Positions 4,456 through 47,948 of a stretch of DNA of 64,000 bases are shown in pieces; positions within the stretch are counted from its first letter, which is position 1, and every line of letters begins with the position of its first letter. The stretch spans positions 124,001 to 188,000 of the IMG/VR virus record IMGVR_UViG_3300044796_000657; one strand, given 5' to 3'. The notes below the pieces were generated by a model that was not told the DNA's origin, did not search any database, and worked only from the letters and a program-made list of their open reading frames with translations. A program made the position numbers and the translations under genes.

Positions 4456-4489
4456 AGCCAACTCCTGTTGAGGTTTATTACAACCAACA

Positions 4490-4503
4490 GGGTGTATGGT
4501 CAC
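4490..4503 (-). repeat. 14-bp junction element, copy 4
   Basis: exact; contains TGA stop of ORF 4500-4733. Confidence 0.95.
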
Positions 4504-4733
4504 TTACCCAACATCACGGCAATCGGCGCATATTGGGCATGATGGAATTGATCTTCGATAGCTTTCCGAATCACTTTATCCAATTCAACCCGCAAAGGGT
4601 CGCCAAGAGGATAACATGACATCACCCGAAAATCTTGAAGTGATTGCTCAATGACTTTCATTGCTGCATCAATCGCCGTCTTCGTCACATGGTCAAGACT
4701 GATAATCGCAATAGCCATGACTATCTCCCACAA
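4500..4733 (-). CDS. hypothetical protein
   Basis: 77 aa ORF ending inside the motif. Confidence 0.55.
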   Translation of the reverse strand: MWEIVMAIAIISLDHVTKTAIDAAMKVIEQSLQDFRVMSCYPLGDPLRVELDKVIRKAIEDQFHHAQYAPIAVMLGK

Positions 4734-4772: not shown

Positions 4773-5582
4773 TCACTCGCCCGCTTCTGGTTGTGCTCCA
4801 AAAAACAAAACGTTAACCCGATTGGCAACCTTATTGAGAGGCGGCATATCCAAACGGACATACTCCGTTCGCTCAATTTCCAAATCCGGATTCAAGCGGG
4901 CATGATGTTTCGGAGGCAAGGATTCCAAATCAACAGCCCTTAACTTGCTGCTGAATCTTCGCCGTTGGATATAAGAACCCCGCTTGAAGAAATCGGGATA
5001 GTTGTTCCAATTAACACCCTTTTTGAAAAGCATTTCCTGTTTTTCAGAACCAGTTTTGTGCATAAGCTCGCCGTGACTGTAAAACTCTTGTGCAGCCATT
5101 GAAATTGAATTCTTCGTGGCATCAAACTCACGCCACAAAAATGCGTTCGCACCCTCTTCAAGTGTCGGCAATTGCCAAACCCGACAATCGAAAACCGGTT
5201 CCGCTGCCGTTTTTTCGGCGATGAAACTTGGAAGCAAGCGATTGAATTTGACCGAACACTTTGCCGCCAAAACACTCACCATCTTCTGGATTCGGCCATC
5301 AAAATAGATTTGACTTTCCGTAGTGCCAGAATACCATGCCAGCGTGATTTCGTCCGATTGCGTATAACCACAAACAGCATTGGTTTCCTCAACAAGATAC
5401 TTAACCGTCTCGATCATAAGATCGGACAATCGTTTGTCATAAGGCCGTTCAAGTCCGTTGGTGAACTTGGAAAACCCCTTGCCATCCAAACGGGCAACAA
5501 TTGGCAAAAGAGGCAGAAACCTTCGTCCTGCTTCCATGCCTTCCAAATACTTCATTCGGTCGCCGAAAACATCAGTTATCAC
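4773..5582 (-). CDS. thg1: tRNA(His) guanylyltransferase Thg1-like protein (3'-5' polymerase)
   Basis: RLDGKGFSKFT, YTQSDEI, FDGRIQK and FDCRV motifs. Confidence 0.92.
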   Translation of the reverse strand: MITDVFGDRMKYLEGMEAGRRFLPLLPIVARLDGKGFSKFTNGLERPYDKRLSDLMIETVKYLVEETNAVCGYTQSDEITLAWYSGTTESQIYFDGRIQKMVSVLAAKCSVKFNRLLPSFIAEKTAAEPVFDCRVWQLPTLEEGANAFLWREFDATKNSISMAAQEFYSHGELMHKTGSEKQEMLFKKGVNWNNYPDFFKRGSYIQRRRFSSKLRAVDLESLPPKHHARLNPDLEIERTEYVRLDMPPLNKVANRVNVLFFGAQPEAGE

Positions 5583-5605
5583 AAAAAATCCTCTATTTGC
5601 GAAAA

Positions 5606-5619
5606 GGGTGTATGGTCAC
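5606..5619 (-). repeat. 14-bp junction element, copy 5
   Basis: exact; contains TGA stop of ORF 5616-5855. Confidence 0.95.
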
Positions 5620-5855
5620 TCAGGTTTGGGATCACCGAAAAGAATGGTATCAATGTAATTCTCTTGCAACCACGAAGACGGAAGATCGCCTTTTTCGCCC
5701 CTTGTAGAAACCAGTTCCAGTGTAGATTGAAAGCGTACCCCATCGGTTGCATTTTCAATGTAGTCATAGTCGCTCGCCAAAGCAGCACAAATTTGCACAA
5801 TAACGGCATCGGATGATTCCGCCAACTTCGCCTTGACTTCTTGTTTTGTTCTCAT
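5616..5855 (-). CDS. hypothetical protein
   Basis: 79 aa ORF ending inside the motif. Confidence 0.6.
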   Translation of the reverse strand: MRTKQEVKAKLAESSDAVIVQICAALASDYDYIENATDGVRFQSTLELVSTRGEKGDLPSSWLQENYIDTILFGDPKPE

Positions 5856-5870
5856 TTTACTTCTCAGTGT

Positions 5871-6380
5871 TTACAGATAATCTAACTTAATTACAATGTG
5901 TTTGTCAACCATTAAAGACCAAGAATCCAATTGTTTCTGGATTTCCTTATCCAATGACGTTTGATCGTCTTTGGCAATATCCTTTGGAATTTTCTTGCGT
6001 AAATCTTGGCGTATTTGTCTCATGGCAACTTTGGCATCTTCACCAAGCTGCTTGACACGCTTCTTGTTTTTGTCACGAGTTTCCTCAGTGGCAACAGGAA
6101 TCGTGATACGAACAATCGTCTTCGCAGCATAAGCCGACAAGCCTTCGTGTTGAAGTTGTTTGACTATTACTGAAACGATGTCTGGATCGTAAACATGAAC
6201 GTTAATGCAGTCCCGGTCGGAAGACGAGGAACCGAGATGGGAGATGGGCGTTTTCTGTCCGTAGTATTCCACACGGATAGAGTCAACAAGGCCAACATTA
6301 ACCGTTGAACCATAAATCATGCCGACCTGCGAACAGAAATGATCGTAGCATTTCTCTAATTTGGATCGCAGGTCTTGAAT
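5871..6380 (-). CDS. frr: ribosome recycling factor homologue (start non-canonical or uncertain; first in-frame ATG at 6320)
   Basis: LVDSIRVEYYGQKTPI, IPVATEETR, GEDAKVAMRQIR and KEIQKQLD; RRF-like first helix encoded at 6380-6321. Confidence 0.85.
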   Translation of the reverse strand: MQDLRSKLEKCYDHFCSQVGMIYGSTVNVGLVDSIRVEYYGQKTPISHLGSSSSDRDCINVHVYDPDIVSVIVKQLQHEGLSAYAAKTIVRITIPVATEETRDKNKKRVKQLGEDAKVAMRQIRQDLRKKIPKDIAKDDQTSLDKEIQKQLDSWSLMVDKHIVIKLDYL

Positions 6381-6421
6381 CAGTTTGTCATTGGAAGAAA
6401 CTCCTTATAGGGTGAACTTAT

Positions 6422-6449
6422 AGTATAGCAGAATTACAAATTATGTCAA
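6422..6449 (-). promoter_or_regulatory. sigma70-type promoter TTGACA-N16-TATACT for frr
   Basis: consensus boxes upstream of AAGGAG. Confidence 0.65.
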
Positions 6450-13012: not shown

Positions 13013-13036
13013 AACGCCCTCCAGTTCTACCAAGGG

Positions 13037-13050
13037 GGGTGTATGGTCAC
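13037..13050 (-). repeat. 14-bp junction element, copy 6
   Basis: exact; between promoter and SD of the RuvB-like gene. Confidence 0.95.
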
Positions 13051-13059
13051 TAACTCCGA

Positions 13060-47809: not shown

Positions 47810-47903
47810 AGAAACACTCCTAAGAGGGCTATCGGGGGTTGGTTGGCGAAGCGAAATACCCCGCCCAATACCACACCTACCCTTGCTTCATTCACACCAC
47901 GCA

Positions 47904-47917
47904 GGGTGTATGGTCAC
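47904..47917 (-). repeat. 14-bp junction element, copy 8
   Basis: exact; overlaps predicted transcription start. Confidence 0.95.
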
Positions 47918-47919
47918 TC

Positions 47920-47948
47920 ATCGTATCTTATTGGCAAGTTAATGTCAA
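47920..47948 (-). promoter_or_regulatory. sigma70-type promoter TTGACA-N17-TACGAT
   Basis: -10 box 2 nt upstream of motif copy 8. Confidence 0.75.

Follow-up and report, generated by a model that had tools for sequence, protein, structure and literature searches.

A start-less frr gene behind a three-codon leader

We analyzed a 64,000-nt stretch of DNA, hereafter called the window, that comprises bases 124001–188000 of a 430-kb phage record whose genome carries 36 tRNA genes. On the minus strand of the window, a coding frame at 6392–5871, ending in a TAA stop at 5873–5871, encodes a ribosome recycling factor (RRF), the product of frr. Its translation matches Pfam family PF01765 across both domains (E value of 1.5e-28; 100.2 bits against a cut-off of 29.7) and, at E < 1e-5, 21 solved RRF sequences, aligned over residues 8–170. 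Upstream on the same strand lie a sigma-70-type promoter at 6449–6422 (TTGACA-16-TATACT with a TG-extended −10 element; 11 of 12 consensus matches) and a Shine–Dalgarno (SD) sequence, AAGGAG, at 6406–6401. A transcript from this promoter should, by prediction, start approximately 8–12 nt ahead of the SD. After a spacing of 9 nt, the SD is followed by a leader open reading frame (ORF) of only three codons, ATG ACA AAC TGA (fMet-Thr-Asn-stop), at 6391–6380.

The RRF frame is shifted by −1 relative to the leader ATG and reads AAT GAC AAA CTG ATT CAA GAC CTG. It is open from 6404 and closed on its 5′ side by a TAA that overlaps the SD (6407–6405), and between 6404 and the ATG at 6320 it contains neither ATG nor GTG nor TTG. 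Its Asn codon AAU at 6392–6390, which lies 8 nt from the SD and overlaps the leader AUG, is the landing codon proposed below, at an offset of −7. The first RRF-frame codons at the leader stop are CTG ATT (6383–6378), with 20 nt between the SD and the ATT. The first canonical in-frame ATG, at 6320–6318, was taken by the gene caller as the start of a 149-amino-acid (aa) product but encodes an internal Met. For this segment, every sequence statement of the initial annotation holds, namely a promoter followed by AAGGAG, 9 nt and ATG ACA AAC TGA at 6391–6380; re-reading the frame from 6404 to 5871 also bore out its claim that frr has no in-frame canonical start ahead of 6320.

A phage tmRNA gene (7411–7042, minus strand; Rfam RF00023, 104 bits; ARAGORN tag peptide VEPELRMAA*) is located two genes upstream of frr, so that ribosome-rescue and ribosome-recycling functions adjoin. 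Between the two genes lies a 178-aa Cys-rich ORF (6977–6441, minus strand) without a Pfam match. On the other side, shortly past a 79-aa ORF that follows frr, positions 5582–4773 (minus strand) encode a Thg1-like tRNA-His guanylyltransferase (Pfam Thg1, 4e-30, plus Thg1C).

Conservation of the cassette and the true RRF N-terminus

Relatives were gathered by profile search and contig look-ups. The arrangement recurred in eight loci, the window and seven further ones from other samples, whose RRFs are 38–66% identical to the window RRF. The common cassette consists of an SD, a leader of the form ATG-NNN-RAY-stop, the RRF frame at −1 and a hairpin. Across the eight loci, the leader keeps the pattern ATG-A[CG]A-[AG]A[CT]-T[GA]A; it reads ATG ACA AAT TAA in the closest relative, L002, ATG AGA AAC TGA in L016 and L018, ATG AGA AAT TGA in L021, ATG AGA GAC TAA in L019 and L022, and ATG AGA GAC TGA in L023. 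An SD-like sequence is present 7–10 nt 5′ of the leader ATG in seven of the eight, L016 having no clear SD upstream of its leader, and TATA(T)AAT-like boxes occupy the position equivalent to the promoter in L018, L021 and L023. The Leu codon that overlaps the last leader base and the stop is YTR throughout (8/8). All seven further loci carry RRF at −1 without a canonical start near the N-terminus; comparing frr 5′ ends in related phages, a check that the initial annotation had suggested, hence returned the same start-less layout in these seven. The L019 sequence was found identically in a second sample (L020), as was that of L018 (L024); the latter two are on contigs of 140–475 kb and, thus, also belong to huge phages. 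When L019 and L022 were compared by blastn, similarity was detected only at −5 to +150 around the leader. A −1 frame change that the product needs and that is conserved, as in programmed −1 frameshifting, is common to the eight loci. With its layout kept in eight related loci, the cassette looks like a programmed recoding signal rather than an error.

Ordinary frr genes served as controls. Among 38 from Planctomycetota, 35 possess an ordinary in-frame ATG, while the remaining three are split or truncated RRF matches without an ordinary in-frame start. The nearest in-frame phage relatives, L015 and L003, also have normal starts. In a protein tree, the window and L002 group with these two (support 93/90), apart from the other six recoded loci, which implies that the cassette was lost once or gained twice. 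Further searches added no locus of this type: blastn of the locus against GenBank phages gave no match, tblastn against the same set retrieved host-like frr genes and the jumbo phage Phosso with an ordinary annotated start, peptide-pattern scans of IMG/VR yielded nothing or only the L018 phage again, and a metagenome pattern scan recovered only distant cellular-type RRFs with normal starts. We also scanned the whole 430-kb genome for SD-served mini-ORFs over a start-less long frame. Apart from frr, one match emerged, a 131-aa ORF, open 190 nt upstream, that was judged spurious; the layout with the target frame closed just upstream occurs only at frr, and a genome-wide habit was accordingly rejected. 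Regarding the host, the cellular RRFs retrieved with peptide patterns of the clade (L027–L064) all stem from Planctomycetota metagenome-assembled genomes, and L002 has a neighbor gene of the planctomycete-typical SBP_bac_10/N_methyl type, both of which hint at a Planctomycetota host.

Downstream of the leader, minimum free energy (MFE) and centroid folds predict a two-tier hairpin at 6374–6324 (minus strand), with an outer stem pairing 6374–6366 with 6332–6324 and an inner stem pairing 6355–6349 with 6341–6335. The candidate start codon CTG at 6371–6369, discussed below, sits within its 5′ arm. Counted from the A of the leader ATG, the first pair is at +18 in seven of the eight loci and at +17 in L022, placing the onset 5 nt (4 nt in L022) past the leader stop. 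Hairpin Z-scores across the eight loci range from −0.5 to −6.5. Seven loci share the same long-range stem, GACYTGCG with CGCARGTC, in which 93.8% of cells are paired as compared to 18–38% in slid-partner controls. In two of its pairs, both partners are replaced between loci, U-A by C-G and A-U by G-C. In L023, 9 nt of the 5′ arm are lost, and a different compact hairpin forms at the same position. A downstream structure at 5–9 nt, as known from programmed −1 frameshifting, is, therefore, present in all eight loci and accompanied by covariation. Folds of the in-frame sisters L015 and L003 revealed no such hairpin, and an Rfam search of the leader identified no known RNA family.

Solved RRFs align with the product from the Leu codon 6383–6381 (residue 6 of the solved chain) onward, and the stretch 5′ of ATG 6320 aligns to residues 6–26. 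This stretch, thus, encodes the first helix, and a start at 6320 would drop about 21 residues, in agreement with the earlier claim that such a start would delete this helix. To characterize the segment, we compared seven loci over the 21 codons of the RRF frame that separate the leader stop from the site of ATG 6320. Codon positions 1, 2 and 3 account for 10, 10 and 16 variable columns, respectively. Pairwise synonymous/nonsynonymous counts are 117/159 in the RRF frame, as opposed to 43/233 and 25/231 when the same stretch is read in the other two frames, and 64/79 in the undisputed downstream part of RRF. Judged by these substitution patterns, the 21 codons 5′ of ATG 6320 evolve as coding sequence. 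A protein of 149 aa that starts at ATG 6320, with the leader as a mere decoy upstream ORF (uORF), has in its favor that this is the first canonical in-frame start codon. We nevertheless regard it as very unlikely: the upstream codons are under coding selection equal to that on the undisputed part of the gene and align with the first helix of solved RRFs, ATG 6320 has no SD, and the homologous codon is ATC in L002, CTC in L016 and TGC in L018. Coding selection upstream, together with the missing start codon in relatives, indicates that the 149-aa product is not the actual RRF protein. Gene callers truncate all of these RRFs, which annotation pipelines should lengthen by about 21–26 residues.

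The mundane explanation of a sequencing or assembly indel, or of a decaying pseudogene, draws on the fact that one extra base in the AAA run would bring the leader ATG in frame. Two assemblies speak against it. A Logan contig from a peat DNA run (18×, possibly the source sample) has zero differences and zero gaps over the site, and a metatranscriptome contig (6494–6303) that belongs to a different sample and study likewise matches the window with zero differences and zero gaps; both are assembled contigs, which hide rare variants. The frame offset is, moreover, common to eight diverged loci with differing bases at the site, L019/L020 and L018/L024 are identical pairs from different samples, and the entire RRF frame is intact and under purifying selection. 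An indel or pseudogene is, thus, exceedingly improbable, and the sequencing indel or recent frameshift that the initial annotation had kept as its alternative is refuted by the independent assemblies together with the conservation across eight diverged loci. The metatranscriptome contig extends over the frr leader into the 3′ end of the Cys-rich ORF (to 6494), reflecting either read-through from that ORF or DNA in the RNA library.

The matched codon pair and routes into the RRF frame

Some event at the leader stop must move ribosomes into the −1 frame. A feature that all eight loci share is a pair of matched codons: the triplet at −7 is cognate to leader codon 3, and a stop follows the latter, in 8/8 loci. 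AAU is matched with AAC or AAU in five loci and GAU with GAC in three. Other RRF-frame offsets yield a cognate triplet in zero to two of the eight loci, and the background of −7-type matches at ATG-initiated ORFs of the genome is 3.6%. Positions −1 and +7 switch jointly, being either A/A or G/G, and the distribution of these states on the protein tree indicates at least two independent coordinated changes. In addition, all eight loci have A at +8 and Y at +9, as a match to xAU requires. The RRF-frame codons between the landing site and the stop show only conservative swaps, D/E and K/R; only a model with a −7 move translates these two codons and, thereby, accounts for the conservative changes. 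The N-terminus predicted by this model aligns without gaps, and at the same length, with Planctomycetota RRF N-termini of the MTTEEILLDVEERMEKA type. The SD is positioned 13–15 nt 5′ of the paused P site, within the range known for stimulation of −1 shifts (dnaX).

From these sequence patterns, we propose, with a probability of roughly 0.4, that RRF synthesis is coupled obligatorily to the three-codon leader by tRNA-guided backward re-pairing at the stop. Ribosomes would load at AAGGAG and AUG, make fMet-Thr-Asn and pause once UGA occupies the A site, with their leading edge against the hairpin at +18. Being only two codons past the start, the ribosome would still hold the SD–anti-SD helix, with the hairpin positioned where mRNA enters, +12 relative to the first base of the P site. 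The hold on the short peptidyl-tRNA would be weak, and tRNA-Asn could un-pair from AAC; the looped-out mRNA would relax by 7 nt and tRNA-Asn would re-pair 7 nt back, on the cognate AAU that overlaps AUG. This step would restore the SD-to-P-site spacing to 8 nt, the relaxed initiation spacing. Elongation would then resume with GAC AAA CUG AUU, meet no stop and unwind the hairpin, giving a product predicted to start with M-T-N-D-K-L-I-Q-D-L-R-S-K-L-E-K-C. The move might take place with peptidyl-tRNA before release or with deacylated tRNA after release. We infer the backward movement, as well as its timing, its efficiency and any regulation, from the arrangement of the conserved elements. In work on uORFs of 3–5 codons, the SD was found to pull ribosomes back and to stay paired in ORFs of fewer than six codons (PMC9955659).

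The −7 pattern itself rests on eight loci with about two to three independent covariation events and was spotted after many patterns had been inspected. The re-pairing model is weakened by P0165, which has an in-frame ATG 13 codons upstream. The stop contexts also count against it, being UGAU in five loci and UAAU in two. Both are efficient terminators in E. coli, and such strong contexts would disfavor a shift that competes with release. The backward steps described so far are −1 and −2, and a hop of 7 nt in this direction is, to our knowledge, without precedent.

Several other routes into the RRF frame were weighed. Coupling at an overlapping stop and start is established biology, and the leader could be released before the same ribosome re-initiates with fMet-tRNA at ATT 6380–6378 or CTG 6371–6369. 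The codon overlapping the leader stop is ATY in seven of the eight loci, YTG occurs 8 nt past the stop in seven (TTG in four, used by gene callers), and the efficient UGAU and UAAU contexts suit a model that needs release. We still find re-initiation doubtful. No single position carries a start-like codon in all eight loci, as ATT is replaced by ACA in L002 and YTG is removed by the 9-nt deletion in L023 with leader and hairpin kept, which excludes either codon as a universal start. ATG or GTG occupies the candidate positions in zero of eight loci although the change from ATT to ATG is a single, cost-free one, and in place of the canonical start typical of termination–reinitiation the window offers only ATT and CTG. 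Both starts would require a non-translocating ribosome to melt 5–9 bp of the hairpin, and the −1/+7 covariation and the invariant RAY are left unexplained. Furthermore, a three-codon uORF with a UAAUG junction gave no downstream reading in E. coli (PMC9955659). Of the initial interpretation, recoding or restarting at the leader stop is supported but its specific assignment to the ATT is not; the TG-ATT overlap that had been read as a coupling element is likewise not conserved, its counterpart in the closest relative, L002, being TAA-ACA.

Alternatively, a −1 slip of the ‘shifty stop’ kind would carry peptidyl-tRNA-Asn from AAC to AAA, with CUG decoded next (M-T-N-L-I-Q-D) and the SD and hairpin as stimulators. 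Its geometry is classical, with the hairpin 5 nt after the A-site codon and the SD 13–15 nt upstream. A_AAY is found in five of the eight loci, the Leu-Ile codons match a conserved hydrophobic pair of cellular RRF N-termini, and a one-base deletion in an in-frame ATG ACA GAA CTA ancestor (L003 type) would create exactly such a site. However, the other three loci carry A_GAC, where tRNA-Asp cannot re-pair with AGA, so that a slippery heptamer or tetramer as in programmed −1 frameshifting is lacking, and a slip leaves the covariation of position −1 with +7 unexplained. We consider this route unlikely. The tetramers A_AAC and A_AAU are also not −1 shift-prone in E. coli (PMC4066793), and the slip site at A-AAC suggested initially is not supported as proposed, on this basis and because of A-GAC in three loci. 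Additional candidates were rejected outright. A forward hop to GAC or AAC (+8, +11) would find a cognate codon in only one to two of eight loci. Transcriptional slippage would have to act on a run no longer than AAA, and the RNA contig is identical to the DNA, although contigs hide rare variants. An alternative genetic code is unnecessary because the problem is one of frame and not of stops.

A related layout was detected at L017, a separate RRF lineage whose neighbors include T4-like RNA-ligase genes. There, AAGGAG is followed after 8 nt by ATG TGC TGA TGA (L017:2380–2421), the RRF frame is without ATG, and a UGU cognate to the Cys codon of the two-codon leader lies at −2 in that frame. A plain TTG start (2419), homologous to the ATG of a sister locus, would also account for L017, and the succession of a leader and such a TTG is a point in favor of re-initiation. 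The L017 leader raises the possibility that mini-ORF leaders are a wider theme for phage frr genes.

Known recoding systems and a possible recycling sensor

In architecture, the cassette is similar to dnaX-type −1 frameshifting (E. coli dnaX, IS3/IS911), which has the same upstream SD-like element, shift site and hairpin 5–6 nt downstream, and shares with the frr cassette the backward direction and conservation across relatives. The cassette, in contrast, contains no X_XXY_YYZ or shift-prone Z_ZZN motif. Its site is at codon 3, with the A site occupied by a stop, the role of stimulator would fall to the initiation SD itself, and the shifted frame encodes the whole protein instead of an alternative C-terminus. 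The +1 frameshift of prfB (RF2) likewise concerns a gene for a translation factor whose synthesis depends on changing frame at an early in-frame stop close to an SD, and this likeness suggests feedback through the factor’s own translation step. Here, however, the direction is −1 or −7 rather than +1, the SD spacing is 13–15 nt instead of 3, the codon is AAC or GAC where prfB has CUU_UGA_C with its SD 3 nt upstream, and the stop context is strong, whereas the UGAC of prfB is weak. RRF, moreover, does not read stop codons, and any feedback would, therefore, need to act after release or via peptidyl-tRNA drop-off.

Phage T4 gene 60 and stop-hopping in E. coli have in common with frr the matched take-off and landing codons (8/8 loci), the stop 3′ of the take-off codon (8/8) and an adjoining hairpin. 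They differ in that the frr move would be 7 nt backward and not 50 nt forward, with no forward bypass of a gap; the frr hairpin begins 5 nt past the stop, leaving the stop outside, and a three-residue chain cannot give a nascent-peptide signal. The infC gene (IF3) resembles frr as a translation-factor gene with the non-canonical start candidate ATT, but its AUU is served directly by the SD, whereas in frr 20 nt separate the SD from the ATT, which L002 lacks. Engineered constructs with uORFs of 3–5 codons in a temperature-sensitive RRF background correspond to frr in having a short, SD-served uORF followed by an ORF without its own SD. In these, the SD was reported to pull both released and mRNA-bound ribosomes backward (Inokuchi et al. 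2023, PMC9955659), and downstream reading was observed when the start was on the SD side of the stop (PMC9955659). The constructs were engineered with AUG starts, while the frr locus is natural, has no AUG and adds a hairpin and matched codons. Because the cassette lacks a defining feature of each of the dnaX, prfB, gene 60 and termination–reinitiation families, we file it outside these families as a new variant of programmed recoding. A literature search for recoded or autoregulated frr genes retrieved none.

By analogy with prfB, the cassette might serve as a direct sensor of recycling capacity in an autoregulatory frr loop, a reading that we put forward as a speculative and rather improbable one. 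Efficient termination of the leader would leave the substrate of RRF, a 70S ribosome with deacylated tRNA-Asn or tRNA-Asp. Plentiful RRF would dismantle this complex, and no phage RRF would be made. Were recycling limiting, the complex would persist, and the paired SD would draw the 70S ribosome back by 7 nt, whereupon the deacylated tRNA would re-pair on AAU or GAU and elongation in the RRF frame would restart without initiator tRNA. This after-release version gains appeal from the strong termination contexts (UGAU, UAAU) and from what the gene encodes. In E. coli depleted of RRF, restarts were not detectable after two natural stop codons (PMC7538156).

Should the proposed mechanism hold, the cassette would represent a new type of recoding signal, located at the third codon and using the initiation SD as a spring, and recoding might, thus, also move a ribosome backward onto a matched codon. 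The sensor version would additionally be a natural use of ‘unscheduled’ post-termination translation. The locus provides about 90 nt of natural sequence with which to probe two disputed points: whether post-termination ribosomes on mRNA can return to translating, and whether such resumption is used by cells or phages to gauge recycling capacity. It would also imply that huge phages regulate the translation factors that they carry, with bearing on the takeover of host ribosomes.

Elsewhere in the phage genome, Pfam searches returned no match for RF-1 or peptidyl-tRNA hydrolase. An IF3 homolog is encoded at G000:C1:223482–223730 (minus strand, locus L066; IF3_C, 2.4e-23), with ordinary in-frame ATGs. 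Within the large array of 36 tRNA genes, ARAGORN reported a tRNA-like gene with the four-base anticodon ggaa (G000:C1:399874–399948), which may be a tRNA of the frameshift-suppressor type. Finally, an 18-nt motif, TGAGTGACCATACACCCT, occurs in five copies with zero to two mismatches, none being expected by chance, all on the minus strand of the window (4489–4506, 5605–5622, 13036–13053, 39354–39371 and 47903–47920). The two copies inspected, at 4489 and 5605, are situated at gene junctions, and the motif may have a regulatory role, for instance as a phage promoter.
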